A stretch of 64,000 bases of DNA. Origin: Convolutriloba macropyga (lineage: Eukaryota). Shown here in pieces: positions 6,121 through 51,040 of this stretch. Numbering within the stretch: position 1 is the first letter of the stretch; the number at the start of each line of letters is the position of its first letter. The notes below the pieces were generated by a model. The model had not been told where the DNA came from. It searched no databases and saw only the letters and a list, made by a program, of their open reading frames with translations. The translations under genes were made by a program, and so were the position numbers. The stretch spans positions 16,430,001 through 16,494,000 of the forward strand of contig NC_134475.1 of assembly GCF_964194025.1 (NCBI RefSeq). The letters are read 5' to 3'.

Positions 6121-6721
6121 AACAGAATGAAAAAACCACGCCGAGAGCGCATAATCAACTAAAATTTGCCACTTTTCTTGATTTCGAATCCATTTTGATG
6201 CTAATAAATTTGCTTCATCTTTGTGTTTCTTAATAGAAGCTCAATGTGTCTCTGCTTTATTGTGGTTGAGAGAATATCCTGGCAGAAAAGTTACTGCAAG
6301 TTTTCTAATAATGCTTGAAAAGTTACATTTTCTCATTTTGTGGAAAAAATTTGGTTAGGGATTTTCATAGAGTAGATTTTCTTCGGGGTTTGTTCATTTT
6401 AATCTCCACTCCGTTACTTTCGTCTTATATAATCATAAAATTATAATGCTTCATTTGTGATCAATTTGTGGAAAAATTTGGTTAGGGATTTTTGTAAAGA
6501 AGATTTTTCGGGGTTTGTTCATATTAACCTCCACTCCGTTAGTTTCGTCTTATATAATCATAACACACCCCAAGCCATAAATTGAGTAACATTTTTACCT
6601 ACCATTCAGAGAATTTCCAGAAAAAACTGCGTTCAATTATACGACGCTATTCAAAAAACAGCGAAACATATCTTTTGTGTAATAAAAGTTAAACATTTAC
6701 CTCTAGATAATATCATTGAAT

Positions 6722-7291: not shown

Positions 7292-7719
7292 TTCCAGTTT
7301 GAAAAGTTTGATATAATAAGTTTCTCCTATCTATTCACGGATGTCTGAAAAAAATTATGTCGTCCTCTATCTCTTTTGTTCGCGCATCTTTCTTGATCTA
7401 TAATTGTTGGAGTTCGTATGAAGCATGATGTAAAAGTCAATGCCTCATGTGAAAAACAAATGCTTAGGTCACATTTACCGAGCCAAATTTCCTGTTAAGC
7501 TTGTTCTTAAAATGGCATCAAGTTAAATAGTCGTCAAAAATAACTTGGCAAAAAATACAAAATTTTTTTTCATGCGATTAAAATAAAACGATTTTTTGAA
7601 ATTATTCACAGTTAAAATATATTTTATTTCAGAAAATTACTTCAATCTCTATTCCTGAGTTTTTGAAAATCCCGGGTATATTGCTGCCTATTCCTGATAA
7701 AGGATTCTTACTTTCATTC

Positions 7720-10700: not shown

Positions 10701-10860
10701 CGATTTTACCTCCTTAGTTGATCTTATTTTTCTGCGTACAGTTTCAATTTCACAATTATCTGCCGTTCTTTTTTTGTTTAATGTCGCACTGTGATAACTG
10801 GATGAGCCGTCGTTTCAATTCTTGCCGGGTCCAGTTTTTGCAGCTTTTAAAAAAAAGGAA
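7720..10860 (-). mobile_element. L2-clade LINE, internally deleted copy 1
   Basis: Minus-strand fragments: APE (ESWI, RGGG), RT (ISNLSYISKLLE, SAAFDTLDH, GVLQGSVIG, YADD) and the L2-type LSQLDYCNSL. Confidence 0.85.
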
Positions 10861-11039
10861 TTCCAGAGCAGATAGTTCTGCAGTATCGATATTTTGAAAT
10901 TATTCACAGTTGAAAAGATTTTTACAACAATTTATTTACAGTTATTACACTAAAGTTACTTCAATCTCTTTTCCAGAGTTTTTGAAAATCTCGGGTATAA
11001 TGCTGCCTATTCCTGATAAAGGGTTTTCACTTTCATTCC

Positions 11040-14000
11040 TACGCACCAATGACAAACGCAAAAGAGCTTTCAAAATCAAATATTAACTAAAAAAGTCTTC
11101 AGTTTTCAACGATAATTAAAACTCATGGGGTACTAGTTCCATTTCAAAAAGCAAATTATTCCATTCGAAAGGAACAGCAAAACTGAATGATCATTGCCCA
11201 AATGAAGTTGTGACATTAGGAACTTTCAAATGGTACGCAAATCGGCATCTAGTCACTTTATCTTTTGGGAAAACTAGTGCGCCAAGATAAATCGAAACTT
11301 TCCACGGATGGTGAATTAAACGGTGACTTTAAAGTAGAATTTTGTAGACGACACGTTGTTTCATGGCTATCCAATGAAACTCTTTGATATAATTTGCTGT
11401 TGGTGAACCAAGTGTTAGCCAAAAGTGAGACGACACGCTGAGTTCATTATACGCTGTAATTTCTGTATAATATAAAAAGGTAGTCCATATTACAGTGAGT
11501 TGCAGTAATCTAGTTGCGAGAGAATCATTACCCGAACTAACTCAATCAATGCCTTTCTGTCGACTGTATCTCTCATTGAATACATTTTCCACAGGAAATA
11601 ATAACATCTACAGCACAAAGAACTAACTTGTTTTGTATATGAAAATCTAGAATCTAAGTTGAAGCCCAACAAAGTAACTTTGTTAAAAAAAATTGGCGTA
11701 TAAACATTGTTCAATATCGCTATTTAAACTATTCTTTCTCTTAAAAAACATGTACTCAGTTTTGTTCGAGTTTAATCTGAGCTTAGCACCACTGAACCAC
11801 TTTTGCAGAGTCGTAAGTATCAAATCAAAAGCCCCTTGATTTATCAGTATTTGCATAAAGGCCGCCCCTTCTAATAGTTTTGAAATGTAACTTAGGTTTG
11901 AGATAGGTTGATAATTTGAACAATCTTCATTGTCAGAATTTGCTTTTTCTCAAGTGGGGCTTAACAATGGCCATTTTAAAGGACTGAGGGAAATATCGCG
12001 CCTTCAGAGAAAGATTAGGAAGTTTCTGGAGGTCGAGGTAATCTGGAAATGATTTTACAAGATGGGTCGGAATGATGTCCAGTGGAGATGTACTATTTGA
12101 CAACGCTGAAATCAACTCTCTAAATTGACTTATTGACAACTCTGAGAACGAACTCATTGAATTAACTTCAGTTTTCAACTTCAGGACCTATTGCAAGGAA
12201 TCAATGCAACAATGTTTTCCACTGTAGATATAAAGAACTCGTTGAAGTCGTTTGCAAGCTGTTTTTTGTTTTCATATTTCGGGAGATATTATACATTTTG
12301 ATCAAGAAGCAATTTTAAGGTAGCAAAATTTGTCGGCTGCAGTTTTTTTTATCAACGCATTCTCATTGTATAAACTACACTTCGCTAAGAATTTTTCAAA
12401 ATAAATATTGGTAACTTTTTCATATTCAGATTTTAGTACAGATGTTTTCGACTTTCTGTATTTGTCATCAAAAAATGTGCATTGGTGTTCAGTAAAGGTT
12501 TTTACTTTGAGTGGTAGAACGGAGTCCAAAATTTTCTCAAATCTTAGACACTTATCCCATGCTTCTTCAATACTCGAGGAAACATGAAACTTTAGGCACG
12601 GCTTTAATAACCTAACAAAACCTTCAGAATTAAACTTTTTCCAATTTCTATACATCAAACGGTGCTGAGATTTGGGTTTTTTCACACTGCTGAGCGAGAA
12701 GCAAAAAAATGAATGGACCGAAGACGGAATAAAGGTATTCGATTTAACATTAGTTGAAATACTGTTTGACGCTAAAAGATGGTCAAGAATCCCACCACTT
12801 CTGTTCGTTTCTCGCAGACGTGCTGAGTTCAGCCAAAATCTTTAACAAATACGTTCGACATTTTCGATTCATCGTTATTTAGGTTCAGTGAATTGTTGAA
12901 ATCAACCAGGAGAACAATCTTGTCGAATTGTAGCCTTTTCTGTTCAAAAAAATAGTAAAGTGATCAATGAATGATTTAACATTTAATCCAGGTGGTCAAT
13001 AATTAGCGATTACTAATTAACTGGTAGCCTCAAATGTTAAAGAGGCGTTACAGCATTAAAAAAATTCCGATATAATTTCAAATTTTTCCAAATGGAGATC
13101 ATAACGGTAAAAGAAGCAAGTTCCACCTCCTCTTTTATTAATCCTTGGTGCACTATAGAGAAAAAACCCCGGGGGACAACACTGCTCTAGACTAAAATCG
13201 TCATCTGAGTTGTTTGTAATCCGCGATTCTACTAATACTCCCAAACTTTTTCTTTTACATCCAAGAGCGCATTCATATCTTTCGTTTTGTTAACGACAAC
13301 GTACATTATGTAGACAAATGTTTAGTTCTGTAGATCTTTGTTTCGCCTAGCTCTGTTTTAATGGAAGACTGGCTAGTAGTCAAGTTTGAGGCACTTTTGT
13401 AGCCAATGACGGGCGGCTTCATTCAGGTAAAATCCTGACACCGAAACGTTTTCAGGCCCGAAATCACGCAACTTAAATTTCTCCTCATCAAAATTAAAAA
13501 ACAATGAAAAGCTTTCGGGTGAGCTTTTGACTTCAAAATTATCGAATATGAAATAATTCAACGTTATTTTCTACACAATACTCTTCCATTTTTGTTGTTG
13601 TTATGTTCTGACTCAATCAATTTCTCAATCAACTCGAAATTTGGCGAATAAGAATTAGTTCAACGTTATTTTCTACACAGTACTTCTCCATTTCTGTTGC
13701 TGTAATGTTCTGACTCACTCAACTTACACATAAATAACAATGCTTCGGGGGTTTTTTGACACCCTTGATGGCTGCTGGATTGGTGTTATTTCTTGATTTT
13801 ACCTCCTTAGTTGATCTTATTTTTCTGTGTACAGTTTCAATTTCACAATTATCTGCCTTTCTCTTTTTGTTTACTCTCGCATTGTGATAACTGGATGAGC
13901 TGTCGTTTCAATTCTTGCCGGGTCCAGCTTTTGCAGCTTTTAGAAAAAGGAAGTCCGGTTTCTTTATCAACGCTATCTCATTGCGTAGTATTGTCACCTC

Positions 14001-14420
14001 TTGGATCAAAGAATAAACAAAATCAAGCTTTTTCTCCACGGCAGTAATTTTGTACAGCGCAGATAGTTCTGCAGTACAGATAGGAGGACAGCCAGCACAT
14101 GACCAGTAGATCATTCCGTGATACTAGCGGTACTTAAAATTCCCAAACAACCAAAGTGAACAGAAAGTTTCTTACATTTGACAAAAAATGCACTCAATTC
14201 TACATTGCAAAGCTCGTTACAAATATTGCGGATAAGTTCAGGCGATGGCAGCGGCAGTGGGGGCACCATTGTAACTTGGGATAAAATAGGGACTAAGGGA
14301 AGTGGCCGCTAGGGGCCTAACTAACTAGTCAAACAAATGTGGAGAACACTCACACCAACTGTTTGACTAAGAAAAATATTGAGGATGGCAAAAAAGTTAG
14401 GAAACAACCAAGCAGGTGCG
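11040..14420 (-). mobile_element. L2-clade LINE, copy 2, including PHD-like ORF1 5' end
   Basis: Paralogous to 7720-10860 with different deletions. ORF1 remnant CNELC...KCKKLSVHFGCL...WSCAGC at ~14090-14270. Confidence 0.8.
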
Positions 14421-14639
14421 GAGAACACTCTCGCCAAATGCTTGATACCAAATATGGAACTGTAGTTAATTTTCGTATGAATTAATCCGCCGGAAGCTGA
14501 AACCCCGGTAACTGGGGCTACCCATACAAAGTCCGGACTCTGACACCACAGTAAATAACAACAATCAAGAGCTGAAACTCAATTTAATAGCCTCCCGGGT
14601 GCACAGTTCAAAAAATTAATCACAAAGATTTGGCTAAAA

Positions 14640-15175
14640 GAGTGGTTTAAGAACTATGACGATAAAAGCGATCTACATCAAAAAGCTGAAAGCGCAATTA
14701 AATATGCGCTGAGTACCCGGGGCAGAAATTAACATTGAAGTATTAGTTCAAATACAAAAAAAATTGATTTTTGAAATTCAAAATTTATTCTGGTGCATGT
14801 AAATTCGAAATTTTGGCATCCCAACCAGTAAAAAACAACAACAGATAAAAATGAAATTAAAAAACCTTTTTCAGGAATAGAAAGCATTATACCCAGAATT
14901 TTCAAAAAATCCGAAATTGAGATTGAAGTTAATTTTTTGTAATAAGTGTAAATAAATTGTTGTAAATATGAATTTAACTGTGAATAATTTCAAAGGTTCG
15001 TTGTTATTTTGAACCATTTTTTTTTACGAAAAAGTAGGATCAAAGACAAGTTCATGTACTTTGTAAATGATTTTATTCATTTTTGAAACCTGACGACAAA
15101 AGCAATGTTCGAAAACGTTCGTTTTTTCAATCAAATTAAAATTTATTTGACAATTACTTCTTCTCATCTAAAAGA
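14640..15175 (+). mobile_element. Penelope-like element 3' fragment (GIY-YIG end, 3' UTR, pLTR)
   Basis: 14650-14990 is an inverted diverged copy of ~15230-15550 (GIY-YIG tail, AIYIK.LK..LN). 15056-15175 recurs at 16257-16355. Confidence 0.65.
15083..15130 (+). ncRNA. Degenerate minimal type I hammerhead ribozyme (PLE-associated)
   Basis: gaaac-CTGACGA-c-aaaagcaatgttc-GAAA-acgt-TC-gtttt. The core is intact, loop III is palindromic (ACGT), stem I is aaac/gttt and stem II is mutated. Confidence 0.55.
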
Positions 15176-27429: not shown

Positions 27430-30400
27430 ATGTCCCTTTTAAAAAATAACTCTTCAAATAGTAATTCGTTCAACAACGACAAAGCAACATTGGAACATGG
27501 ACAAAGAGCAGAGGAAAATACCTCAAATTTTGTCTACAACCCGAATCACAAATTACCCATTTATACGCAAAGATCCCGATTGCCAATATACGCATCTAGA
27601 AGTGAGATTTTGTATCTGTTAGAGAAGTTCCAGGTCCTTGTGCTGGTGGGAGAGACGGGATCTGGGAAGTCCAGTCAAGTGCCACAGTACTTGCTTGAAG
27701 TTGGATGGGCACATAATCGGTGATGAGCATTAGAATCATTGCACATGTATTACTTTTGCAATTATACCTATAAAATGCTGATTCGTTCTTTTTTCAAAAA
27801 GTTTAATTGTTGATTAATTTGTTGATGAAGGTTTTGAAGCTTTTAACGCTCAAATGATAGTTTCAAGTTACATGGTTAAAATTAAGAGCTTCAACTGATA
27901 AATTGCTCTCGAACTAACTTTGACACATATATTGTAAACATGTTGGTCTTTTTATGCAGATTTTTGCTTGACCGTTTTTGCGCTTTTCTTCTAGAACCTT
28001 CTTTGACTTAGCAAGTGACTTTTTCATGCTGCACTTCTTCATTTTTAGTGATCTCAATTGGTCTCATCGTTTGCTGCCAATATAAAAGCGATTGTGAGTG
28101 GTTGAGGAACAAAGCCGTTGTAAGTTAGTGGTTAAGATGGCAGATCGATATCCGGAAGTCGGGGGTGCGAACCCCCACGAGGTCGGAGTTTTTGCGCCCA
28201 TAAAAAATTTCATAAGCTATACACCTAAATTAGATTGACCCGCCTGTTGTTCGAGAGCAATTTATCCGACATTATTGGCTTTTGTCTAAGTGTCAATTTA
28301 ATCCTGGAAACAGCTCTTACTGAATGATCACCTGAGTTGGCTTTTACCAGTAACCGTATCCAAGAAATCTAAATATTGTCAAAGATCTAAGCCAACTAAC
28401 CAAAAATTTACACTAAGGTTATCTGGTCACCGGACAATAGATTTAAAGGACAATATATCGAGAAAAATTGGGACAATAGATTGAAAATTAATCTGATCGC
28501 ATTGGCTGAAATTAAGCGTTGTTTGCGAGCTGGCATAAAATTGATACATCTGGCCTCGCGAGCCATAGCCATGCCTTAACGGCCGGTGGGACTTGATATG
28601 AATCTATCACAACCGAACAATATATCACGACTGAACTTTTAATGCCTTGTATATGTGAGCGCTTGAATCTGGCTGGCCGATACGCAACTTGAATAATTTG
28701 ATTTTCGATCTATTGTCCTAGTACCAGGTTATCTTGACCGTTATGAACACAAATTCTCATGATGAACATCACCTTTGTGTTAGAAAAATGATAGCAGTCA
28801 CTCAGCCTAGACGAGTTGCCGCTGTCTCTTTAGCAGCCAGAGTAGCCGAGGAACGCAACTGTATTTTGGGCGACGAAGTCGGATATTCGATTCGGTTTGA
28901 CGATTGCACATCACCCAGTACCAAGATTAAATTTCTTACTGACGGGCTATTGGTTCGCGAAATGATGGGTGACCCATTGCTTGAAAAGTATTCGGTCATA
29001 ATGCTTGACGAAGCGCATGAACGAAGTATAAATACAGACTTATTAGCTGCTTTGTTGAAAAAGATTTTGAAGAAGAGAAAAGATTTAAGGGTTATTATGT
29101 CCAGCGCGACTATCGACGCTCACAAAATGAAGGACTATTTTAATGTGAAGGAACGTGGCAACAATAACGATAATGCAGCCATTTTGCAAATTGAAGGTCG
29201 TTGTTATCCCGTCGACATAATGTACTCGAAACATCCGGTTGATGATTATGTAAAAGCTACTGTTGATACAGTTTTAATGATTCATAAGACCAACGCCCCT
29301 GGTGATATTCTTGCATTTCTAACGGGTCAAGACGAGGTTGAAGAATGCTGTCGTCTACTTACTGAAAAACTGAAGACGTTTTCGTCCAAAACTAAGTACA
29401 GAATCCAGTCGGTGCCTATGTATTCAAACTTGCCTGCCAGAGAACAATTAAAGGTTTTTCAGCGAGCACCCAGTGGGACTCGAAAAGTGATTTTCTCAAC
29501 AAATATTGCTGAAACCTCGATTACTATTGATAACATTATTCACATAATTGATTGTGGCTTTGTTAAAACTACAGTTTATGATCCAGATTTCAATACTGAA
29601 ACGTTGACAGTTTTACCCATCTCACAAGCATCGGCCAATCAGCGTTGCGGAAGGGCGGGAAGGGTCACGTCAGGAAAATGCTATCGACTTTACTCCGAAG
29701 AAGAATTTCTCAAACTGAAACCCCAATCTGTGCCCGAACTCCAAAGAAGTTCCATGGCTTTCCCAATTTTGCAGTTGAAAGCTTTGGGTGTCTCTAATGT
29801 TGCAAAGTTTGACTATTTATCCCCTCCCCCGGCCAAGAATTTTTCGCGAGCGCTGGAATTGCTTTACTCTTTAGGGGCAATTGACCCAAAAGTTGAATTG
29901 ATAAACCCTCTTGGTCATCAAATGGCAGAAATGCCTCTAAACCCGATGTTTGCTAAATGTCTGTTAAAAGCGAGTGAATTTGATTGCTCCGAAGAAATTC
30001 TAACATTATGTGCCTTGATGCAAATTAAAAATTTATTCCATGTTCCTTCAAGCGGAAAAGAGAAAATGAAAGCTGCCAGAGTTCAGAGAGAATTTTATGC
30101 AATGGAGGGTGATCATATGACGAATTTAAACGTATTCACCACTTTTGTCAACAACCGTCGGAGTAAATCGTGGTGTGACAAATATTACGCAAGCTACGCT
30201 TCACTTAACAGAGCATATAATATCAGAGAACAGTTGCTAAAGTATGTTCAGAGATTTGGAATCGAGATGTCATCGGCTAAAGGCTTCGACGATGACAAAG
30301 TTTTGAAGTGTTTATGTTCGGGGTTCTTTGCAAACGTGGCAATATACACTTCAAGAGGCTGTTTTAAAAGTTTGCGAGATCCAGTTAAATCGCCGGATTT

Positions 30401-36920: not shown

Positions 36921-38389
36921 TTCGTCGAAACTTTGCCTGCAGTTGTGTAGTTTTCAAGTCAATTTATATAAGTCTAATGCCAGTGTATAAATGCCATTTT
37001 ATGCAGCTATTATTGGGTGGTGGCGAATAATTCTTTCCTGTTGTCTGAAAATGAAGAACCAATTAAATTAGAAAAAGCTTTACGTACCAAAACCACCTGG
37101 AGCATTTCACATCAAAGGTGAACGCTTTTCACCTGGTTGACCAATATAGTTTTATGGGTGTGTCATTAATAGCTTTAAAGCTTTGTGCTTGTTCACTTTG
37201 ACTGCGTTTTCTCACTGCTTACATCGTCACGCCTAGTTGCTAGGTGAGACTTCATTTTCAAAGTACACAAATGAACAAAATTTTTGTTTCCATTAACTTC
37301 TGTAAACAAGTTAGCGCATGTTTTGCCCTGATAATGGTTTGTTCAAATGTTCTCCAACTGTTATGTGCACTCGCTGAGTTATATAAAATTGAATCAATGG
37401 CGAATACCTTGAAAATCTCTAGCTGACGGTTTATTGTGTTAGTGACTCGGATAAATATTTCTTCCTTCTGTATAGCTTAACAAGGTGAATACTAGTTAAC
37501 AGGGCGAAGCTCAACAACTGTTTCAACCAAGATGTTTGCTTTTAGAGAGGTAGACAAAGCGTCAACAGAGGGCAGAAGTTTAAAAAAGCTGGTATATTGT
37601 CATAAAACAGCTGCGGTTACCTTATGCAATTATTTCTCTTCCCGGTCTTTTTATGCAATTTTTTCTCTTCACAGTTTTTGCGCTTTCGTGTGAGAACATT
37701 GTTTGAATGCTTGTGACTTTTCCACAAGTTCTTCATTTTTGACTGGCCTAAGTTGCTCTCGTTCTGAAATAAAGTTCCTTGGTAAAAGCGATTGTGAACG
37801 AATGAAATCGAAAGCATTGTGGCTGATTGGTGTAGATGTCAGTTTGCCTACCTGGATGTCAGTGATTTGATCCCTTGTGGGGCCTTTTTTGTGCTCCTAA
37901 ATTTTTTCTCAACTACTCCCCTCAAATTTAAGTAAGGGAGGTTTTTAAAATTCTACTTCACTAGATAATCGAAAACTAGAAAATCCAAAAATTCGTAAAC
38001 GACTGAATCGGCCATTTTTGAGTTTTTGAATGATGTCACTTCAATTCTCGGCGCAGGCATAAAAATCGACCGCATGCGTCTTGGTAAAAAGTTCGCTTGG
38101 GATAAAATTCCGCCCCCGAAGTTGGGGTTGGAAAATGAGAGGTGGGGCTATATGACAGAAATCAAACTCGTAATACCGTCATAAGTTTTAGTTATAAGTG
38201 TCAAAATCTGCCTGGAAATGCCGGTCCTGGAGGGGGGGGGGTGTTCAAGCAGCTCGAATTGAAAACATATGAATGCACTCACTTATGGTAAAAATTAGAT
38301 TATGATGAATTATTAATGGCGATTGCAAGTGAAATTGTTATTTGTCTTCAGATACTTAATGAATATCTTCAGATGAGAACATTCTAAAC

Positions 38390-39581
38390 ATGCCTTCAGA
38401 TCTCCCGTTAAAGGTCAAAATTGGTCCCTCTATTCTGAATTCTGACCTGTCATGTTTAGCAGACGAATGCAACAGTCTAATTAAAAATGGCGCTGACTAT
38501 CTTCACTTGGATGTAATGGATGGCCATTTTGTACCCAATTTAACCTTTGGGGCTCCTGTAGTTAAGAGTTTGAGGAAACATGTTGAAAGGAGTGTGTTGT
38601 TTGATATGCACATGATGGTAGCTGAGCCTGAAAAATGGATCCAAGGGAACTTTTTCACACTAATTGTCGCTAGAACCGGCATACACCACATCATTATTAT
38701 GTAGTCGCATATCAACCTCTTGGCCGCATATTATAAAGAGACGAAATTGCTCATGGAATTTATTGAAATGAAAGCGTGTAGATTGGGATTGAACGCAGAA
38801 ATGGTATCGTTCGGCCGTCAAAGAAATTTTTCCCAAGAAACATGCGCAGGCTGATATCTCAAAGTGTTAATTGTGGACACTATTAAGAATTTGATGATGG
38901 AAAGCTGAACTTGTATTGGTGTAGAATCCGGTGATTTTTCTAATTAGAGTTACGTCTGAGAAATGTCCTTAACATTTTTTTAATTAAGTCAGCTATAAAC
39001 GAACAAACGCAAGCAAACTGCTATTGGCTAATAATTGATTATAAAATATAAGCGGAAATGCACGGTATGCAAATGTTAAATCTATATTTAAGAATTTGCG
39101 ATTTAATTTGAGCAATTCTTGCTGAAATGAAATGGTTCCCTAGCATATTAAAGATATGGCTAATGCCGGCGCCGATCAGTACGTGTTCCATTACGAAGCC
39201 TCCAAAGATCCGGCCAACTGTATCCGGCTAGTGAAGGAATCCGGTATGAAGGTTGGAATGGCTGTGAAACCCAAAACAGACGTTACTCTAGTTGACGAAT
39301 ACGCCGACATGGTCGATTTGGTACTGATTATGACAGTTGAACCCGGTTTTGGAGGTCAAAAGTTCATGGTTGACATGATGCCCAAAGTGGCGCATTTGAG
39401 GCAAAAGTTTCCTAAATTAGAAGTTGAAGTTGATGGAGGAGTTTCTCCAAAAAACGTTGACCAATGTTTTACAGCGGGTGCTAATCAAATTGTCTGTGGA
39501 AGTGCTATTACTCAGAACTCAGACCCAGCGGGTGTAATTAAACAACTGAAAACAATTGCAGATGATGCCTTTAAATTTTGA
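38390..39581 (+). CDS. RPE: Ribulose-phosphate 3-epimerase (exons 38390-38645, 39154-39581; 227 aa; GG-AG intron)
   Basis: [39 protein letters not shown] and EVDGGV motifs. The join gives EKWIQDMANAGA, colinear with animal RPEs. Confidence 0.93.
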
Positions 39582-40001
39582 CTGGGGCAGTGATTTGACA
39601 ATTTTTTTTTGGTATTCTTTTGGTATATATGGATTAACATTAAATGCCCGAGTTTAAACTGTTAAACTGTAGTAAAATGAGTTGTAATACAGAAAAACCA
39701 TTATAGCGTTTTCAAAACTATATCAGATTTTTTCATTTAATAGCGTGATGTTATCGTTTTGCTAGCTCTATTTTTAGGTGCGGGTTTGACGGGCAAGAAG
39801 GCTAAAAAGCACAACATACTCGTCATTATTGAGCATTACCCATAAATCGATTACCGGATTTCGATCTCAACAATGATTGTTATTACTGGAAGTGCCGTTG
39901 TTATCAGTGAATTGAAATGCTTTTATACGGAAGACAACTATGATAATGTGCGTGGTTCATCTGTTTCGATTTCAGTTAAGAAATGTGAAAACATTAACAC
40001 A

Positions 40002-43000
40002 ATGAATCTGCAACCGTCTTCATCCAGTGCATTTTCTGCATCTGAAGTGGTGTTGACGGAGGTCGAAGATCCATATCAGAACGAATCGACGTCATTCGAT
40101 GGTCCTCCACCTGCAAAAAGGCTCAGACTAGTGGGTTCGGGATCCACACATGTCTCGGCGGTCACTGACGCAAACCAGGCAGCTAGTGATCCTATTCTGG
40201 AAGAGCTGTTTGGTGAGAAATAATTGGAAATCCTGTGTATGAATTTTTAACAAGATGAGAGCGGGCTGTTGAGCAGTCTAGGAGAGTTGTCTTGGAATTG
40301 TCATTTTTTAGCTAATTGAAGCTAAATGAAAAATTGAATGATTTAGATGTTTAAGAATCTGGTTGCTATTCCGTCAAAATTAGAGGCAATTTTATGAGCT
40401 GGAGGTAAAATTATAAGTGCCAGTTGAATGCAGGTAAAAGTTAAAATAATTTAACGTTTCTCAAGATGAGCTTGCATCTCGTAAAGAAGGAATGGGTATA
40501 TAATAATAGTAATTGTGGTTCCTGCGTAATCGCAGTGGAACATCATTAGGCCTACAGTAGCCTGTTCAAAGCTACCTTTTTTCTCATTATTCCCCACATT
40601 TCAGACTGATCTTTTTATGAGCAGCATTGCTCTTTTTTTGTACCTATAGCCAAAAAAGAATAATGCTGCTCATAAAAAGAATAATGCTGCTCATAAAAAG
40701 AATAATGCTGCTCAATCTGAAATGTGGGGAATAATGAGAAAAAGGGCAGCTGAGAGCAGGTTACTGTAGGCCTAATGCTGTTCCGCTGCGATTTCGTAAT
40801 TTCAGTCGTTTTTCGGGGATATTTTTTGGTTATTTTTGCCACGTTTTAGTCAAAGGAATACTGTTTCATTTTGAACCTTATTTTAGGCACACTGAAAGTA
40901 TCTCACGCAGTGCCACAGGATCAATTGAGGAACCTCTCGTCCGAAGAACAAGTCAGAACTCTGCGTTCTACCATCACCCAGTTGCAATCGGAGAAACCCT
41001 TGGAAACTCGAATGGCAGCTGCCAACTATCTTTTGAACGTTGCAATCAACACCAACATTCCGAACAAGCTTATTTTCTCACTTTTTGAACTAGTACAGCA
41101 ATCAGAAATACCAGATGCATTGTTAAGCATTCTTCTCCGAATTCTATGGATTATCGCGAACGAGAGCTTGTTAGTAAAAAGCATGCTGGTCAAGATTTGC
41201 GTGAAGTTGCTAAGTTCCAATTTAAACAGAGTGGCTCGAATTGCTTGTCTTGAGATACTGGGTGACGTTGCCGATGTCGCGGCAGACAGTTCACAGATGT
41301 TGAAAATATTCGAAGAGTTTGCTCAAAGTCACGATTCTCGAATCAGGCGAGCTGTTGTTGAAATGATTTGTGGTTATGACTCGAGAGGTGGTAAAATATC
41401 GCTTGCTGTTTACCATAGATGCCTTGACTTGCTGAAAGACGAAAATGAAAAAGTTCGAATTGGTGCTATTAAAATCATGTCGAGTTATGCTAATAAATCG
41501 CCGAACGTCAAGATTACAATTGGTGATAAAGGCGATGATTATATGCGATTAGAAGAACATGCATTTTCTCAAATTTGCGAACTGGTCAATGATATTCAAG
41601 TTCCAGTTCGCGTTACGTCTGTCAGTATTCTGAGAAACTTCATAGGCGTCGATCAGAAATTTTTGCAGCAGACTTTAGGGAACTGTTTCCTTTCGCCTGA
41701 GGATTAAAATTTTGTTTTCACAAGTATGGAAAATGGGAGTTCATTTTCATGGGTTTTCCCTTGATGGTATTTTTCCTATCTGAAATGGGTGGTTATTTTC
41801 TTTGGAGCTCACACCGATTTCTTTCGAAATCGGTGTGAGCATATTGGTGCGCATATTTACCATCAAAAGATTTTGCAAAGCCTATGCTGTGGAGGTAGCT
41901 ATTGGTGCATTGTGAAGGGGAGAGTGAGTAAAGTTGTTGGCTCCTTGGCATCATTGCATCATGAAAAATAAATGGCCGTCATTATAGCATAATTGTTGCT
42001 ATTGACGGGTAACCCCCCTTAAACTATCGGGGCTAGTAGACTAAGTAGACTATAATACGAGGGAACCAAAATAGCAATTATAGATGATTAAATTCTACCA
42101 AGGGGAAAGGAAACAATTCCGCTTTTAGACAAGCAATTGATGTCACAGTTGCGAACGAAGCGTAGCTCCCATCAGAAGAACGCCGAGTTGGTTCGAAGTG
42201 GTGCTTACAGCTCAGGTAGACGGTGGGGAGACGATGCACCTCTTGATAATGTAGACGAACAGTCCTTGTCGCTTATAAGCTCGGGCGCTTGTGGAGCTTT
42301 AGTTCATGGTTTAGAGGACGAATTCAAAGAAGTCAGAATTGCTACTGTTGAAACTTTGAGCCACCTTTCGAGTAATCGAAGTACGTTTGCAAAAGAAGCT
42401 CTGGATTTTTTCATTGATATGTTAAACGATGAGATTGAATTGGTTAGAGTGAAAGCGTTGGAAAGCTTGGCGAACATTTCACACCATGCCGTGTTGAGAA
42501 AAGACCAGGTTGTGGATACTTTGAGTTGTTTGGACGATTATTCGGATATTGTGAGAGAGAAAGTGCATTATTTATTGAGGAAAATTCAATTTGAAGAGAT
42601 GGGTTGCCTGAAGTTGACGTTGCAGCGTCTGATGAGGAATTTGAAGAAGTACCCGCTCGATAAAACTTCCATTTATGGTGCTCTGAAGTACCTGGGTTCT
42701 AAGCATTCAAATTTTGTCATTCCTTATAGTAAGTGCGATGGTATTTCCTTTTTTTAGTGAATCATTTAAAAAGGAAAGTGAGCCTTTACCTTATAATATG
42801 AACATCTAGAATTGATCTTTCTGCTGCTAAATTTGATTTATAATGGCCGGGCATACCTCTTATTAAGCGACATTGAGCGATATCACTGATATCACTTAAA
42901 ACGTGCGTAGATATAACCAGGTTTGTGTTGCAATTAAGTTCGTTTCGTAAGCCCTTATAACAAATCAATTGTTTTAGATCATTTTTGCATTTGTTTATGC

Positions 43001-46000
43001 TGAATTTGTTTAACCTGAAATATTACGCTATGCGAGTCTGCAGCTGGCGGATATACGACAAATAAGACTAGCTAAATGTACTCTTGATTGTGAATGTTTC
43101 AGTGAAAGAGCTGTTATGTGCACATCCTTTTTTGGACACTACTGAACCCAATGTCTCAGATCCCTTCTACATCGCAATTATGATCCTAGTTCTCAATGCT
43201 GCCCACTCAACCAGCAGCATCATTGGACTATTCCCCCCATTCATAAACCAACATCACCAGTTTCTCAAGGAATTGCACCCAGAGTTTATACCTGATCTGG
43301 ATCTGAATAAAAACTCATTGAGGTTCTGTTACCGGAGACCAGAAAGTGCAATCAAGTTTCAAGATGTAAATGTGATTGCTCGAAAACAGTACGAATCGGT
43401 GGTGGAAAAACTGAAAGCGTCTGGTGGTAAAATAACAATAAGCTTGCTGAAAAATTTATTGCGTGACCTAGAACATTTGAAAAATTGTGACAAAACATCT
43501 GGACCGGCCAATTTTCTCTGTGCATCTTTGAAAATAACAATAGCTATGACAAAAGTTTTCGAGAAATTAAAATCGTTAACACCGACAAGCCAACTTACAT
43601 TGTCTGATGAGTCAGTTTTTTCTGATCTGAAACGATGTGTTAGTTTCAGTTTTTACTTGGAGGGCATTTTTAATGGTTTGTCCACTGAAACTGTTTCAAA
43701 CATTCTCGAAAATCGATGCATTGCGTCTACCCTTATAGTATTGTTTACGCTATTGAAAGAATCTAATGACATGGCTGGTGGTGAAAAGGCTTTACTGTGC
43801 AAGAATTTTGCTGAGAATGTTCGGAGTTTCAGATTGCGTATTACATCTTCAAGATTACTGCAAGGTCAATTTAGCACTGATCTTCTAAAGCCATTATTGG
43901 AGATTGATCCTTCAAAGTTGACGTTAATTTGTAAGTTTCTGCATCCATTGTTACTGGAAAGTGCTCAAGTGGCCGTTAGAACTATGGTACTTACATCAAA
44001 TGAGTTTGCAACAGGAGTGTCAATGGCGAAGGCAGTTATTAACCATCCACAGAGCTCAGACAGAGTTGAGTCTTTTATGGCTGGTCTGCTGTTGGCTTTG
44101 CGATTAGGTAAATATGAAAACGATAGATATATACGATGATGGTAGTAGCATTTATGTGGTTCTTGATTATTCAGAATTTAAGCCGCCAGCTTCATTTGCG
44201 TGTTTACTAGTGGAATTCAATTCAAACGTGAACCAAATTTGGTGCCAGTTTTTTTATTAATAGCCGCCCTCATCTTCTCAGCCGGCTATTATAGCGCTCC
44301 TATTACGACTCGAAGAGGAGTATTGGAGAAGTCCTTTTTTTTAATCAATTTTATTGGAGTGATTTTTGAAGCGGGAAATGAAACGCATGAAAAAATTTGG
44401 AGTGATTTTTGTGCTGAACAAAAGTGAAGAGCGGAGCGAAAGGAGAGTGGTTTTTGTTCATACCGCTGTTTTTGAGAGAGCGAGAAATTGATGTGTGAAA
44501 AAATTTTCTCTAAGCGAGAGAAATTTTTTTGTTCACGTGCGGCATTTTAAAGCAGTTTTTTTTCATTTCTTTTGGTTAAGAGGTTTGGTTATGATTTTGT
44601 TTTAATTTTAGGCTGGTTTTGGTAGTGTTTTGAAGGTTTTTGGAAACTCATGTGAATTTTATGATAATTCGGAGGTTTTTAATGTATTTTACTGATTTTC
44701 GGGCTAATTTTTGCGTTTTTTGACGATTATTTTGTTTTACTGGCTCAAATGGGTATTGAAGAAACCCCTTCTACTTGAGCAATTTTATGATAACAATTGG
44801 TTATAGTTTTGTGCGTAAGAATCATTTTTTTGTTGAGAAATATGACAAAAAAATTCTGAAAATTGGAACTATTTTTCTTATTTTTTTTTGCAGTTTTTCG
44901 TTTTCTTTCTGTTTTTAGCTAAGTATCTTTGCCTATTATGACTTGCCTATTGTTTTGCGAGCATCTGGATACCCTTATGGCTGAAGGGAGTTTCTCTTTG
45001 GATTTATATGTATTTGAAATATTAAAAAAATTAGTGACTTTTTCCACTTTTTCAGTGGAAGTTGTTTTTTTTTCATAATTTTAGCCTAAAGTATTTTTCA
45101 TAATTCACATAAGTGATTTTTGTAAGTACTAGTTGTTTTGATGAAGTTATTTTGGCAGAGATAGTTTTTTCGGGATCTCAATTTATAACAAAATTTGATC
45201 AGATTTTTTATCATATTTTAACAAATTTGATTTTATTGTTTTTACTTTTTTGTTTGATGACTTTGTTTCAAGATAATCATAAATTAGTGAAGGCACGTTT
45301 TGTGTGATGTGTAGGTGTATGGCGTTTAAATGGATTTTCACTTCGAGTCGTTTCCGGAATTCTTCCGGCTATGTTTTTTTTTACTTCGTCGAATAAAAAA
45401 ATGTTTCGCTTTACCTCATTTTGCCGCTTTTTCAACTTTTTGCGTGATATCTTTTTGACTTCTCTAGGCTAGTTTCTCTCTTCTCTCATTCTGCTAAAAT
45501 TGATTTTGAACATCAGTTGCTCAGCAAAGCAATTCAAAATGAACAGAGTCAGTATAAAAAATTGAAGTCAGAAGTAGAAACGGGATAAACCCATAAAGCC
45601 CAATTTTAGATGCCCGCTATTTGAACGTCGTTCCTGTAAGTCTTAGTTACCATCTCTAATGCTTATTGGTATTGATAGTAGCCCCTGTAGCCTCTCTCTG
45701 AGAAACAGAAGTACGTTATGTTCAACTACGAAATGCCATCAAATTAAATCGGACTTAAAAAATGTTTTTGTACAAAAATCTTTTTTTTTTAATATCTTCT
45801 ATTCTTCCAATCCCAATCATGCTTATTGGAATCAACGGCGGCTATTTTCCGGCAATCTGTCGGGTATGTTTTTAAATCGTGGTAGTGGTCAATGCAAAGC
45901 TCGAATGGTTGAAGTAAGGTTCAGTTTACCCCGTCTGTTGGTCTAGAACAATTCGACCGACCTTAATCGGTTATTAATAGCCGCACAGCGATAGCTGGCG

Positions 46001-49000
46001 CTATTATGGGCCTTATCTTGTTTATTTTACAATTCAAAGAATTTGAATTGTATTGGGGAGGTGCCTTTTTTAAGATCTGTTCACACATTTTCATTATTTT
46101 TGAATTCAAATTGAAGCGATGATTTTGGTCACGACGAAACAGGAAGTGAAGCGACAAAGCGAGTGGTTTTGCGGCGTGAAGTTTTTGCATTATAATTTTT
46201 AAATCGAGTGAGAAAAGGTTCATGAACAAAACTTCGCTTTCTCGCTAGTGGTTTTCTGTTCACATGCGGCATTTTGTTTATTATTAATTCCTCTCGAACG
46301 AAGTTCGTAGCAATTATTGTAAAGCTGTTAGTCCTTTTTAAGCAAATTCTTCGCTTGACCGTTTTGCGCTTTTCTAGATTATTCTGTGACTTATCAAGTA
46401 ACTTTGTTCATTTATGAGTGATATCTGTTGCTCTCACTCCGAAGTAAAGCTTGTTGTTAAAATGAAATCGATTGCAGCAGAGCTAAACTAAGGCCGAGTG
46501 AGCCCTGCTTCTGCTCAGGGATCGGTAGGCGTGGTCGAATCCCGGCGTGGCAATGTTTTTTTGCTCCCATAAAGAAAATTTTATCTAGGCTACGCCCCTG
46601 AATTAAATTGCCTCGCCTGTTTGAGAGCAGTTCTTCAGACATTAGTCGGTTTATGTTTTTTAAAATATTTTTCGATATTTTTCAAATAGTTTTCACAATC
46701 CAGTCATGATCCATTCTAGGTCTAGTTTTTTGTTTGAACCAAATTTTATTTTCCCGCTAATGGTTTTATGTTCATGTGCAGCCTTTTTTGTTTGGTTTTT
46801 TTCCAATTTTATTGATGAGATTTTTTTTAATGACTTTTCCAATCCCGTCATAATCCATTATAAATCTAGTTTCTTTATTCAGTCAATGAAAATTCTTTGA
46901 ATTGTTGGTCAGGACTTCGTCCTGCTATGTTTTTTCCGTCATGATTTTTGTTACGACCATATGACGTCACAGCCACTTCAAATATGCTTTTTTAAAATAT
47001 TGCAGATCTACGAAGCTATTGCGGCTGTTTTCTGGCAATCTGGCAGCTAGGTTATTTTCCTGTTCAGAAATTTGCTCGTGGGGATGCATATGTTCAACAT
47101 TTTCCCCCAATTTTTGCTCATTGTTGACAGTAGTGTTGTTGTGCTTACAGAGGGTTGCTGAGTAGAAGATAGAAGAGGGTTACTGACTTGTCTGATCAGA
47201 CTTATTTGGCTAAGATTTTAGAGTATTCAGATTTTTTGTAGAAAGTTTTTTCTAATTTTGCCGGAACAATCTGCGTCAGATCGAATGAGGGCTATTAGTA
47301 CTTCCAAAGATATTGTGGATTTGAATTTTTGCCTGTTTTTAGCTTGTTTTTGTTGTTGCTCTGACTTGTATTTCAAGAATTGTCTCGTTTTAATTTTAAG
47401 ACGTTTTAAAGAGGTTTCAATTTTGTTAACAGCCTTTTGATCTCACTGATTTTAATTTCCCCCTATTTTTGGCGGAGTTTTAGCGAAAGTGTTGTTGGCT
47501 GTACCTCTTTGAAGACAGAAGAGGGTTGCTGAATTGTTTTGATCGGACTTATTCGGCTAAATTTTTTGACGATTTAGCATAGCAAATATCAAACATCAAA
47601 GACATAGATATGTGCAAGATTCTTATAGCGGGTTTACTTGTTTATTAGCCTTAACTTCATAAATTGAAATTTGCTATTTGTCAATTATCCTTTTATTCCT
47701 TTTCGTAATTTTGTCTCATTTTTTGCTGGTGAAATTGATGTACGCTTTTTTGAGGACGTCTAGAGTGATTTAAATGAACTCATAATTGAATGTGCTTACT
47801 TTAAAACCACTAATTTTCGAAAAAAAATGTTCTCATTTTTTCATAGTCCTAACTATTTCTCCGGTTCATTTTTAGTTGTATATGCCTCGATGCTTTGTGA
47901 CATTTAAAATCTTTTATTCAGTGTAAAGAACTCTCCTGATTTTCATCGAATCCAGTGTATTGAAATTTGATTCGGAATGTTTGTTCATTGTTTCGGAATA
48001 TTTGTTTTATGTTCAATGTTTGTCTTGACAGTCTTTTTATAGCTGCGAAGCTGTAAGCTGAGCGTAGCTATATTGCGGTGCTCTTGGTTTTTTTTTTGTT
48101 TCGTCGTCTGATGCTTCATTTTCGTTTTACATTTGTTCTAGAACATTCTGTCTCGTCACTGCTTAAATGGCTTTTTCGCGCTTGATTTCACGCTTTCTGC
48201 GTGACCTAAATGGCGGTTATTCAGAAACAGAATCTGTTCCTAAAACAAATTTGATTTTAAGAAAACAGATTGTATGGTCTGACAGCCGAGTGGTTAAGGC
48301 GACTGGCTGTTAATCCGGAGATCGCCGGTTCGAGGCGCGACAGGGAAACTTTTTTTGCACCCAAAAACAACCTCCTTTGAAATAAACTTGTAAGTTTTAT
48401 AGGCGGCGGCGATAGCTATTATCAACTCACTTCTGTATCTTTTTCCATCTGTATTTTACGGCACGCAAGTCTATTTCGCAGCTATTCCGGCAATCTGCCG
48501 GCTATGTTTTCAACTTTTGGAAGTCAATGAGAAGCGAATGGCAGATGTCAGTGCGCAGCTAATACTTTTTGAGTGGTTATCTTCCTTAAAGCACAAGTAA
48601 TTTTTCAATTTATACCTGTTTGTTTTCCTTTTGTCTTTTTACTAAGTCTCAATAATGGCTGATTTGATTGACTTTCTAATGAGGCATGAGTCGGTTTATT
48701 CAATGTTTCTATTTGGTAGCGTTTGGTTTTTATGACTTTGTCATTCTGTATTCTCTTGAATTACGGGTTAATTTTGTAGTTCGTATTTATGGGCTGTTCT
48801 GTTGTGTAATCGCTTAGTTTAGAAAACGACGGGCCCTATATGCTTCCCAATGGATGGAAAAGAAAACAAACTTTCATTTTTGCAGTTCATAGTTTTTCTT
48901 TTTATCACTGTTTACAAAATTCTGTTTGATTTTTATTTTTTGTGCACATATTTGTTGTTCTACTTGCTTCTGTATCCCTTTACGTGAATTGAGCTGGGTC

Positions 49001-51040
49001 ACATTGACTCTCAATCTTTTGAACGATTTCCTATAATAGCTAATGGTTGTAGCGACATTGGACCATACTGCCTGCTATAAATGTCACTGGCTTTTAGTTT
49101 TTGGTTGTTCTGTTGTGCTGTCACTTGGTCACATTGGCTATTTTTTGAGCATAGTTGAAACTTTTGAGCTGTTCAACGGTTTTGTCCCATTTCTAATAAT
49201 TTGGAAAATTTTTCAACTTTTCGAAAAAAATTGTTTCGAATTTTGATAGTTTTTCTAGTTTTCTTTTGTTGCCGTTCTTGTTTTCTTTTGTTTTCGCATT
49301 CATGACTTTTTGCGTGTCGACTTTTCGATGCGGATAGATTGAATCTATTCGATTTGTAAAGGCGGTAGTCTGAACGCCCATGGAGCTTCTTTTTGTAAAT
49401 ACGGACTAAGTCATCAATAGTTTTTAAAACTAAATGGGAAAAAGACCTTTTCTATATTCTTTGTTTTATCTTTATCTTTTTGTGTTGTAGTGTATGCTTT
49501 TTTGGCCATCGATGGCTGTTCTTCTAATTAAGTTGAAAGCGCGGCCTTCAGTTTGTCAAATTTTTTGGGTGTGTTTTGCAGGATTTTTTGGTATTTTTTA
49601 ATTCGTCGTCTTCGATTATTGTTGCGACCCTCAAATCACGCTGCAACAAGTAAACATGACTTTTGTTGACTTTTTCCGTTCAGCCGCTGATTTCTTGTTC
49701 TGACAAAATCAGGTGATTCCTTAATAAGAATTGTTTTTTAATGAGAACTTCTTTAGAGTTGCGTTCGATCGAGACCAAACTTTTCGATCCCTTCAATATT
49801 TATCTTTTGCGGTGAAATACAAAAACCAACTTGACTGGTATTATCAGCACTGGTATACATGTCCGTCGTTGTTTCAGATGCCATCGAGTTTTAAATTACA
49901 GAGCATTAATTATGTAATTTTAAATATTGCTATCTGCTCGTTAGTAATTTGAAATATTTTTGTCTGCATTTGGTTTGGTACACTATTATGCCAAAAGGTA
50001 GGATGATTGAAGTAGGAACATTGTGCAAACGCACAATAGCGAGCCTCCTTGTCCGAATGGAAACATTAAGAGAAATGGAAGGGATTTTTACGGGACGACT
50101 TACTTTGGTCATGACTCCGCCATGCAATTGATCAGAACGTTCGTTTGTTTACCGATGAAACGTGAAAATGGTGCAAATCGTTCTTTTTAAATTTTTTGAA
50201 GCTCCGGAAGTTGCATTCAAGTTTTTAGTAACGAATTATGTATCTAATCGTTGAGGCCACGCAGCCAGCTGTCTGTTTAAACGAGTGATAGCTTAAAAAA
50301 CGTTATTGTATGGTATTTTCATTCCTGTGGTACACTGTTGCTGCCAGCCTAAGAAATAGAAGTCACGAAAGAAAGAGCCACAACTGTCTTGCTTGTTATG
50401 ATCTCGTTCTACAACTTTTTAGCAATATTGTTCTCTTTTGTTTAAGGAGTTTTTTTTAAACAAGTTCATTTTTCATCATTTAATTGTGTTTTTTTTACAG
50501 CTTCGCAAATTTTGTAGTAATTCTGTCGGCTACTTGCGGCGAGAAATCATTATGTGCTTTCGTAAATAAATCCATTCAATAATGTGAGTCGAAACTTTAA
50601 ATGTTTTAGTGAATTGAATTCCATAGATGTTGCTTTAGCTGGTAATTTTGAACGTTGTTGCTTCAGACGTGACGTTAAATAACATTGATGACATCAACAG
50701 AGTTCGAATTGTCTTGACTTATCCCGGTGGAACGGACCAAGTCGTTTCTCCGAGTGCCGACAAGTTCCGAGAAGCTAATGATACTGAAGATGACGAACCC
50801 TCATCGCCAATCAAATCACGGAAGGTTCCAGATCCAAAAGCTCCGAAGACTTTGAAACTGAGCACGACTTGTTTTATTTCTCACTCCTCATGGACGGAGC
50901 CAGCTGATCTGTTGATTGGTGTTTATTTAGCTGTGCCTAACTTGTTTGACTACACCATGTCTGTGACAAGTTCTGAAAAATTGGTATCGATTAGCGAAAG
51001 TGTTAAAATTGTTATTCATCCCAAACCCACAGCGATATAA
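40002..51040 (+). CDS. INTS4: Integrator complex subunit 4 (exons 40002[or 39873]-40212, 40887-41678, 42129-42728, 43103-44107, 50667-51040; ~993 aa)
   Basis: HEAT repeats. Signature segments FLQQTLDKQLMS, SSGRRWGDDAP, SGACGALVHGLEDEF.EVR, HPFLDT.EP...DP.YIA and C-terminal SHSSWTEP...HPKP. All joins are in frame. Confidence 0.92.
40525..40796. mobile_element. Fold-back/MITE-like palindrome in INTS4 intron 1
   Basis: ~85-bp inverted arms (cgcagtggaacatcattaggcctacagta...cattattccccacatttcaga and its reverse complement). The inner arms contain a 21-bp unit tandemly repeated x3. Confidence 0.8.
44254..45872 (+). mobile_element. HINE family 2 element in INTS4 intron 4
   Basis: 5' ttattaatagccgc; 3' gcggctatt + hairpin ccggca-atc-tgtcgg + tatgttt. 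Its internal parts resemble 35700-36550. Confidence 0.55.
45971..47055 (+). mobile_element. HINE family 2 element containing a nested family 1C element (46285-46660)
   Basis: Same family 2 termini. The nested copy has aattcctctcgaac...gagagcagtt + cagacattagtcgg and a tRNA-like remnant. Confidence 0.55.
48276..48350 (+). pseudogene. tRNA-like (Asn-GTT-like) module of a family 1C remnant
   Basis: agccgagtggttaaggc (A box), ctgttaa loop, ggttcga (B box). The acceptor stem does not pair. Confidence 0.55.

Follow-up and report, generated by a model that had tools for sequence, protein, structure and literature searches.

An insertion in INTS4 of Convolutriloba macropyga that is removed from RNA as an intron with GG..AG as its likely ends and is probably derived from a DNA transposon

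How does an animal gene keep its reading frame when its coding sequence is interrupted by 450 nt that open with GG rather than GT, and whose two ends could pair with one another? The question is raised by the INTS4 gene in a stretch of 64,000 nt of the Convolutriloba macropyga sequence NC_134475.1, which we call the window and to whose numbering all coordinates refer. The gene is identified by the Pfam domain INTS4_8HBD on the exon that follows the 450 nt (E 3.9e-16), and the INTS4_C domain was detected on an orthologue of the window gene. The frame reads ...CAG CAG ACT TTA G up to 41678 and AC AAG CAA TTG ATG from 42129; the insert between them begins GGAACTGTTTCCTTTCGCCT at 41679, finishes AGGGGAAAGGAAACAATTCC-GCTTTTAG at 42128 and, left unspliced, would be translated as TLGNCFLSPED before reaching a stop codon. 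A preliminary description, made from the letters alone, had presented the insert as an intron with a GG start and an AG end, closed by a stem of 18/20 bp and bordered by a repeated TTTAG, and had proposed that RNA structure stands in for normal U1 pairing. All the sequence features that it listed are present where it had placed them, including TTTAG at 41674-41678 and again at 42124-42128.

Four public runs (X1, X3, X4 and X5) were aligned as assembled contigs on positions 38300-44250. The RNA evidence comes from the contigs of the single run X5 (sample S3), which was taken as RNA-type from its exon-only content; in contigs of this kind neither rare isoforms nor the exact register of a cut are visible. 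Contig 27 of this run (1609 nt, depth 146) joins 41673 to 42124 and skips 450 nt, with the five nucleotides TTTAG placeable on either side of the junction. Because the same contig also lacks the two canonical INTS4 introns 40213-40886 and 42729-43102, it represents spliced RNA, and since the depth of X5 within the 450-nt intron is 0, the joined form dominates. The insert is thereby confirmed as a real intron with non-canonical ends that is removed exactly from RNA. Six registers are compatible with the junction (TT..CT, TT..TT, TA..TT, AG..TT, GG..TA and GG..AG), none of them GT-AG, GC-AG or AT-AC; the removal from mRNA is precise, yet no register combines a GT or GC start with an AG end, as a canonical U2-type intron would require. 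A 5' G together with a 3' AG is offered by GG..AG alone, and this is the register that we infer. Among other intron types considered, a U12-type intron was rejected, as the insert starts with GGAACTGT and not with RTATCCTT.

The runs X1, X3 and X4 are DNA-type and come from two samples (S1 and S2). They cover the insert at the word depth of its flanks and hold no variant at 41679/41680. The joined, insert-less form of INTS4 appears in none of these three runs, and excision at the level of somatic DNA is disfavoured for that reason. The GG at 41679-41680 stands in four independent sources, namely the three runs and L005, a contig from another assembly, which settles the concern of the preliminary description that the G at 41680 might be an assembly error. 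L005 and X4 also reveal a second haplotype, with 9 differing positions in the intron, none of them inside the pairing arms, the haplotypes being 2% apart.

The history of the insert can be read from three unannotated relatives of the locus (L005, L003 and L001), which were found in ENA assemblies by means of the protein encoded by the neighbouring RPE gene of the window. L005 is the other haplotype of the same species; its INTS4 intron is 98% identical to that of the window, and the differences coincide with the variants of X4. L003 and L001 belong to related species, with RPE 78-79% identical to that of the window and, in L003, an INTS4 exon that is 88% identical. Both read across the INTS4 site in one open frame (...QQTLDKQLMSQLRTK... 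in L003 and ...EQTLDKQLMSHLRTK... in L001), giving the uninterrupted proteins ...QQTLDKQLMSQ... and ...EQTLDKQLMSH..., and for this reason the 450 nt are taken to be an insertion into a formerly continuous exon. Judged from these alignments, the INTS4 intron is a lineage-specific insertion, and the sequence lost from the RNA is exactly that gained by the DNA. The expectation of the preliminary description that a GG donor would restore the QTLDK-LMS of animal INTS4 is borne out by the 450-nt RNA junction, which gives QTLDK-QLMS, and by the TLDKQ of the relatives.

The anatomy of the insert points to its source. Its first 20 nt (41679-41698) are 90% complementary to 42101-42120 (18/20), with +1 facing -9, so that the repeat search recovered the terminal stem just as it had been described. 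The duplex has a free energy of -30.6 kcal/mol, a value reached by 0/1000 shuffles and by 0/40 interior windows, and it is kept in both the minimum free energy (MFE) and the centroid folds of the full intron. No other copy of either arm was found in the 64-kb window (19-mer, up to 3 mismatches, with 0.01-0.03 chance matches expected). Terminal inverted repeats within a flanking direct repeat are the signature of a cut-and-paste DNA transposon. Measured from repeat to repeat, the element at 41679-42120 is 442 nt long and is flanked by GACTTTAG and GCTTTTAG, which match at 6/8 positions; we estimate the probability of such a match by chance, with the AG forced, at about 0.04. The preliminary description thus appears to have overlooked that the stem and the TTTAG repeat have a simpler origin: they are most likely the inverted repeats and the target-site duplication of a transposon.

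Among transposon families, Merlin elements have inverted repeats starting with GG and duplications of 8-9 bp (PMC8101967). The INTS4 inverted repeats likewise begin with GG, and a flanking repeat of 8 bp (6/8) is compatible with this family; on the other hand, the INTS4 repeat measures 20 nt against the 24-462 nt described for Merlin (PMC8101967), and its duplication is imperfect. A Pfam scan of six large open reading frames (ORFs) outside the known genes of the window detected no related transposase, DDE_Tnp_IS1595 being the Merlin transposase domain. On its sequence the element is possibly a Merlin-like miniature inverted-repeat transposable element (MITE), an assignment that we offer as a lead and not as a classification.

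From these data we propose, with a probability of roughly 0.65, that a short, non-autonomous, MITE-like DNA transposon inserted into an INTS4 exon and is spliced out as an AG^GG...AG intron (the caret marking the exon-intron border) by the major spliceosome. An element of about 442 nt with 20-nt repeats starting with GG would have entered the continuous exon in the lineage of this species; the target duplication on its two sides, which ends in AG, would be imperfect over 8 bp (or exact over 5 bp). The insertion would be tolerated if the element and one copy of the duplication leave the pre-mRNA as an intron. In this arrangement the exonic copy of the duplication would supply the AG ahead of the junction, the inverted repeat would supply a look-alike of a 5' splice site (G-G-A-A-C-T against the consensus G-T-A-A-G-T), and the intronic copy would supply the TTTTAG acceptor. 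The odd GG dinucleotide would then be the obligatory terminus of the transposon. Removal would most likely be the work of the major spliceosome with relaxed recognition at +2, which in this organism would tolerate G-purine donors provided that an exonic AG precedes them and an A occupies +3. The stem would be primarily a transposon inverted repeat; it may shorten the distance between donor and acceptor to about 9 nt and so help a weak donor to pair with its acceptor, and a helper role of this kind in splicing is possible.

The splice sites themselves argue for the spliceosome. The donor consensus complementary to U1 is CAG^GTAAGT. The INTS4 donor TAG^GGAACT agrees with it at 6/9 positions (-2, -1, +1, +3, +4 and +6), and the canonical donors of INTS4 introns 1, 3 and 4 agree at 6, 6 and 7 of 9, a result that does not favour the earlier suggestion of RNA structure acting in place of U1 pairing. 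The acceptor TTTTAG resembles the canonical TTTTAG and TTTCAG of the same gene. The preliminary description had also noted a purine-rich 3' arm at the place of a polypyrimidine tract; the arm is indeed purine-rich (15/20), but a run of four T directly precedes the AG, so a short pyrimidine tract is present. In the copepod Eurytemora affinis, GA and GG donors have an obligate exonic AG and an A at +3, and the introns that bear them are recent, confined to the lineage and constitutively spliced, the full-length protein depending on their removal (PMC5714493). The same rule (exonic AG, G at +1, purine at +2, A at +3) holds for TAG^GGAACT in INTS4 and for AAG^GGAACT in RPE, and the INTS4 intron is likewise lineage-specific, represented in RNA by its joined form alone and necessary for the frame. 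An INTS4 intron proper to the relative L001 starts (A)GGAACAGTCATG, has an inverted repeat of 12/13 and allows the register AG^GA...AG (or GG..CA). Here the GGAAC terminus follows an A and not AG, and the shift of register to AG^GA suggests selection for an AG^G context. The match of the donor to the consensus, its agreement with the copepod rule, the TTTTAG acceptor and the register in L001 are the reasons for which we favour removal by the major spliceosome.

Several observations weigh against this proposal. The duplication in INTS4 is exact over 5 nt only, two of which are forced by the splice consensus, and its 8-nt version contains two mismatches (6/9 for a 9-bp version). Searches for a second copy of the INTS4 element were negative for the window, for 93 kb of related loci (five loci, by BLAST with both GG-AG introns) and for metagenomes of the Joint Genome Institute (JGI). 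A scan of the latter with a degenerate inverted-repeat pattern gave 14 matches that cover only the 19-21 nt of the pattern and correspond to chance. The 31-mer depth over the intron is that of a single-copy sequence, and membership of a repeated family is therefore unproven. The acceptors of the RPE and L001 introns are separated from the 3' arm by 14-18 nt, a spacing that a simple model of a repeat plus an 8-bp duplication does not explain; the INTS4, RPE and L001 introns have only the terminal GGAAC(T) in common. The RNA run (S3) and the DNA runs (S1, S2) derive from different samples, and X5 holds no unspliced reads of the INTS4 intron, so that the presence of the insert in the RNA donor is deduced and not seen. 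The cut register is likewise known by inference and not by observation, and the same holds for the transposon family, for a spliceosomal reaction with its lariat and for whatever part the stem may play.

The INTS4 intron is accompanied in RPE by a second intron of this kind, which starts with the same GGAACT, is absent from both related species and is removed in RNA. Its ends fold with a free energy of -20, reached by 3/1000 shuffles, and form a stem of 12 nt that is kept in the MFE and centroid folds; its direct repeat is confined to AAG (3 nt). In L001 and L003 alike, RPE reads as one open frame. Run X5 contains its 508-nt junction at depth 103 together with an unspliced contig (38788-39180) across the 3' border at depth 6, which means that one and the same sample contains a GG..AG intron and its spliced product. 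Between haplotypes, the RPE intron (window 38646-39153 against L005 9493-9998) is only 85% identical, compared with 98% for the INTS4 intron and 97% for the RPE exons at the protein level, an uneven divergence for neighbouring introns. One X5 contig carries, 5' of 38350, 17 nt (TGATAAACTTATTAAAT) that occur nowhere in the window. They are joined at an acceptor, ...gtcttcag, some 40 nt ahead of the start codon of RPE, and may represent either a spliced leader or a 5' exon located far away. An Rfam scan of the window gave no match, and no small nuclear RNA or spliced-leader RNA gene was found there.

Within a stretch of INTS4 that forms a single exon in the window, the relative L001 carries two introns peculiar to it (~13859-14906 and ~12447-13645); besides the intron with inverted repeats considered above, the other is canonical (cag^GTATGA), with unpaired ends. 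We surveyed terminal pairing in nine introns from the window and its relatives. Pairing is significant in all three non-canonical, lineage-specific introns and moderate in the one lineage-specific GT-AG intron with a weak donor; there is none in the two lineage-specific GT-AG introns with strong donors, nor in the three GT-AG introns common to the relatives. Within the survey, canonical introns occupy the shared, older positions and the non-canonical ones occupy lineage-specific positions. Canonical introns make up 3/5 of the RNA-supported introns of RPE and INTS4.

The survey bears directly on an alternative that we consider doubtful, though the most serious of those weighed here: that the 18/20 stem is required for splicing, juxtaposing the splice sites and replacing recognition by U1 and by the polypyrimidine tract and U2AF. 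A very strong stem lies exactly at the ends of the INTS4 intron, a purine-rich arm is found where a pyrimidine tract would be expected, and terminal pairing occurs in 3/3 non-canonical introns against 1/6 GT introns (Fisher about 0.05 by our estimate for this nine-intron sample); bridging structures are moreover able to replace U2AF2 in fish introns (PMC4691745). The same association is nevertheless predicted if GG and stem both come from one transposon family. The INTS4 donor equals two of the three canonical donors of its gene in its match to U1, a TTTTAG acceptor is available, and the GA/GG donors of Eurytemora work with no reported pairing (PMC5714493). Covariation yields no signal in either direction, as the arms are identical in both haplotypes and the relatives have no orthologous intron. 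A more specific proposal, which we hold to be just as tentative, is that a GG-ended Merlin-like family creates introns in this lineage whose removal depends on the inverted-repeat hairpin to pair a donor without GT with an acceptor nearly devoid of a pyrimidine tract. If true, it would represent a class of structure-assisted splicing in a metazoan outside the tunicates, with young insertions and empty-site relatives at hand.

A non-spliceosomal excision, of the type proposed for euglenid and Amoebophrya introns, would cut within TTTAG and need neither GG nor AG, and we regard it as improbable. To our knowledge, no excision machinery of this sort exists in animals. The six non-canonical registers, which RNA cannot tell apart, would suit such a cut; the INTS4, RPE and L001 introns, however, all permit an exonic AG, a G at +1, an A at +3 and a 3' AG, a coincidence that would be unlikely if the consensus were irrelevant. 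The anatomy of the insert does recall Amoebophrya, where inverted repeats of 8-20 nt accompany direct repeats of 3-5 nt over the junctions (PMC7789003), while the comparable introns of the tunicate Fritillaria are reported to need the U2 spliceosome (PMC13326754).

Slightly less probable still is the possibility that no splicing takes place, the RNA animals carrying an empty-site allele and the insert being a polymorphic disruption of the gene. The RNA sample does differ from the DNA samples, and the zero depth of X5 in the intron would agree with such an allele; but the insert is present in every DNA source (two samples, at least two haplotypes, and L005) and the empty form in none, an unspliced mRNA would stop after TLGNCFLSPED in an essential and otherwise intact gene, and the sister intron of RPE is found both unspliced and spliced within X5.

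We find it very hard to attribute the junction to reverse transcriptase switching templates across the hairpin and the TTTAG repeats, leaving an artificial deletion in the cDNA. This artefact is classically met where direct repeats surround a stem. Its products are normally a minority, however, whereas the joined form is the sole form in X5 (depth 146 against 0), stands on a contig with two canonical junctions and restores the ancestral frame exactly.

A GT at 41685 is in frame, as the preliminary description had pointed out, and would define an intron of 444 nt and a cDNA reading TLGNYKQ. That this GT is the true donor, or that GG is an assembly error for GT, can be dismissed for practical purposes, with GG in three DNA runs and L005 and TLDKQ in both relatives, and since the RNA junction skips 450 nt and not 444, GT 41685 is not the main donor; it could still give rise to a rare minor isoform, as contigs drop rare variants. 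A stwintron or recursive route to a GT donor was also rejected, the sequence having no internal intron start able to create G^T.

The INTS4 intron is most likely a young member of a group of transposon-derived, non-canonical introns known from a few other organisms, and comparison with described systems shows which of its traits are familiar. Closest among animals, Fritillaria borealis has species-specific introns with inverted repeats and target duplications that are read as MITE insertions (Henriet et al. 2019, as summarised in PMC11282704 and PMC13326754). They are removed precisely from essential genes, and GT-AG introns lie at older, shared positions there as they do here (PMC11282704, PMC13326754). 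The Fritillaria ends are mostly AG/AC or AG/AT, accompanied by a YAY triplet at the 3' end, and GT-AG introns amount to less than 10% of the total; none of the six INTS4 registers fits this pattern, and in contrast to those of Fritillaria the present introns are GG..AG with an exonic AG, in a setting where canonical introns are still common (3/5). The Eurytemora introns resemble those described here in their G-purine donor, exonic AG and A at +3, and in the lineage-specific positions of the non-canonical introns (PMC5714493). They differ in that no inverted repeats or transposon origin have been reported for them, whereas here the GG opens an inverted repeat and the ends pair.

Introner elements of Amoebophrya have inverted repeats of 8-20 nt joining the intron ends and direct repeats of 3-5 nt over the borders, which leave the cut ambiguous (PMC7789003). 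The likeness is one of anatomy only, with a 20-nt inverted and a 5-nt direct repeat in INTS4 and a 12-nt stem and a 3-nt repeat in RPE: Amoebophrya is a dinoflagellate whose introns have no consistent terminal dinucleotides and for which a non-standard mechanism is proposed, while an AG^G..AG register is always available here. Nonconventional introns of euglenids pair +4..+6 with -8..-6, have variable borders and are excised as full-length circles; in INTS4, by contrast, pairing runs from +1..+20 to -28..-9. The introners of Micromonas and Aureococcus, like those of broader introner surveys, take one splice site from the element and the other from the target-site duplication (PMC11282704, PMC12130899). 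As we propose for the INTS4 insert, the element is spliced out together with one copy of the duplication; these introners, however, form high-copy families with canonical GT/GC-AG ends, whereas the INTS4 donor is GG and searches of the window and the related loci revealed no other copy. Fish introns with complementary AC/GT repeats have simple-repeat arms, canonical splice sites and biochemical proof (PMC4691745). They share with the INTS4 intron complementary ends that could enforce the pairing of splice sites and relax the need for a pyrimidine tract, and they differ from it in that the INTS4 arms would be unique-sequence transposon repeats, known here from sequence and folding. A survey of the literature on worms and chaetognaths found no introns of this sort.

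The locus offers a clean, dated case of intron birth in an animal, with an exon that two sister species have in one piece and that is split here by an insert which is removed exactly from RNA. It joins two observations that had been reported separately, the G-purine donors that depend on an exonic AG in a copepod and the transposon-derived, hairpin-ended introns of a tunicate and of dinoflagellates. There is also a practical consequence, as in this genome gene predictors that demand GT or GC donors will cut genes short. On L005, the public gene calls divide RPE into two ORFs and the compared part of INTS4 into three, with breaks at both non-canonical introns and at the canonical INTS4 intron 3. 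The coordinates of the features are collected in the table.

Table. Introns, exons and sequence elements of the INTS4 locus and of the neighbouring genes, in window coordinates.
Feature	Position	Strand	Evidence
DHX35 intron; weak donor tcg^GTGATG; moderately paired ends (29/1000 shuffles); position specific to the window lineage	27720..28783	+	relatives, survey
RPE 508-nt GG..AG intron; start AAG^GGAACT; paired ends; absent in both relatives; removed in RNA	38646..39153	+	X5, L001/L003, folding
INTS4 intron 1; canonical GTGAGA..TTTTAG; common to relatives; no terminal pairing	40213..40886	+	RNA contig, survey
INTS4 exon 5' of the 450-nt intron; ends ...QKFLQQTL + G	40887..41678	+	translation; HEAT matches; X5 contig 27 spans 40886-41673
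Exonic copy of the putative target-site duplication, GACTTTAG; final 5 nt TTTAG an exact direct repeat	41671..41678	+	sequence; junction ambiguity
INTS4 450-nt intron, inferred ends GG..AG; lineage-specific insertion	41679..42128	+	RNA contig; empty sites in L003/L001; DNA runs X1/X3/X4; L005
5' terminal inverted repeat arm; also bears the donor GGAACT	41679..41698	+	repeat search, folding
Perfect 15-bp hairpin with 4-nt loop, internal to the element	41807..41840	+	repeat search, intron fold
3' arm of the terminal inverted repeat; purine-rich; complementary to the 5' arm at 18/20 positions	42101..42120	+	repeat search, folding
Intronic copy of the putative duplication, GCTTTTAG; 6/8 match; gives short T tract and 3' AG	42121..42128	+	sequence
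INTS4 exon 3' of the 450-nt intron; AC AAG CAA TTG ATG = DKQLMS...	42129..42728	+	translation, RNA contig, relatives
INTS4 intron 3; canonical GTAAGT..TTTCAG; common to relatives; no terminal pairing	42729..43102	+	RNA contig, survey
INTS4 intron 4; canonical GTAAAT..CTTCAG; 6.6 kb; no terminal pairing	44108..50666	+	RNA end at 44107 resumes at 50667

The gene DHX35 offers a further comparison. The intron of L003 (6727-7838) lies about 13 codons from the position of the window intron, and DHX35 is intronless in two further relatives (P0123 and P0124, single frames of 676 and 706 aa); on these grounds the two introns were gained separately, and introns would seem to turn over rapidly in the clade. 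Among annotated proteins, the best matches of RPE and DHX35 reach no more than 54-58% identity and are scattered over flatworm, mollusc and vertebrates.

Some smaller observations concern the canonical INTS4 introns. One DNA contig of X3 (depth 50) has 21 nt that resemble 41670-41690 and take in the first letters of the inverted repeat (GGAACTGTTTCC), followed by 15 unmatched letters and then by the sequence from 42795, in INTS4 intron 3; single-nucleotide polymorphisms cluster at 42785-42794. The contig could reflect the presence of this repeat in intron 3, either as a polymorphic second copy or as a fragment, a match of 21 nt being too short to judge. INTS4 intron 1 contains a foldback element at 40525-40796, with inverted arms of 85 nt (88%) and a repetitive, AT-rich centre. 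The word depth over 40489-40886 is about 3,700-6,300 in X1 and 34,000-83,000 in X3 and X4, compared with 10-60 on either side, and since it so far exceeds the flanks the foldback is a very high-copy, MITE-like repeat.

Elsewhere in the window, ORF fragments of a reverse transcriptase (RVT_1) lie at 453-3189 together with a direct repeat of 2.4 kb, and tandemly duplicated blocks of about 3.1-3.3 kb, 90-98% identical, occupy the region between 7.6 and 13.9 kb (7590-13950). A dispersed family of 47-nt motifs around TTCGAGAGCAATTCGTCC..TTAGT, accompanied by companion motifs (families D5, D10 and D14), recurs at about 6-11 places between 20966 and 63963 and is probably another interspersed repeat.

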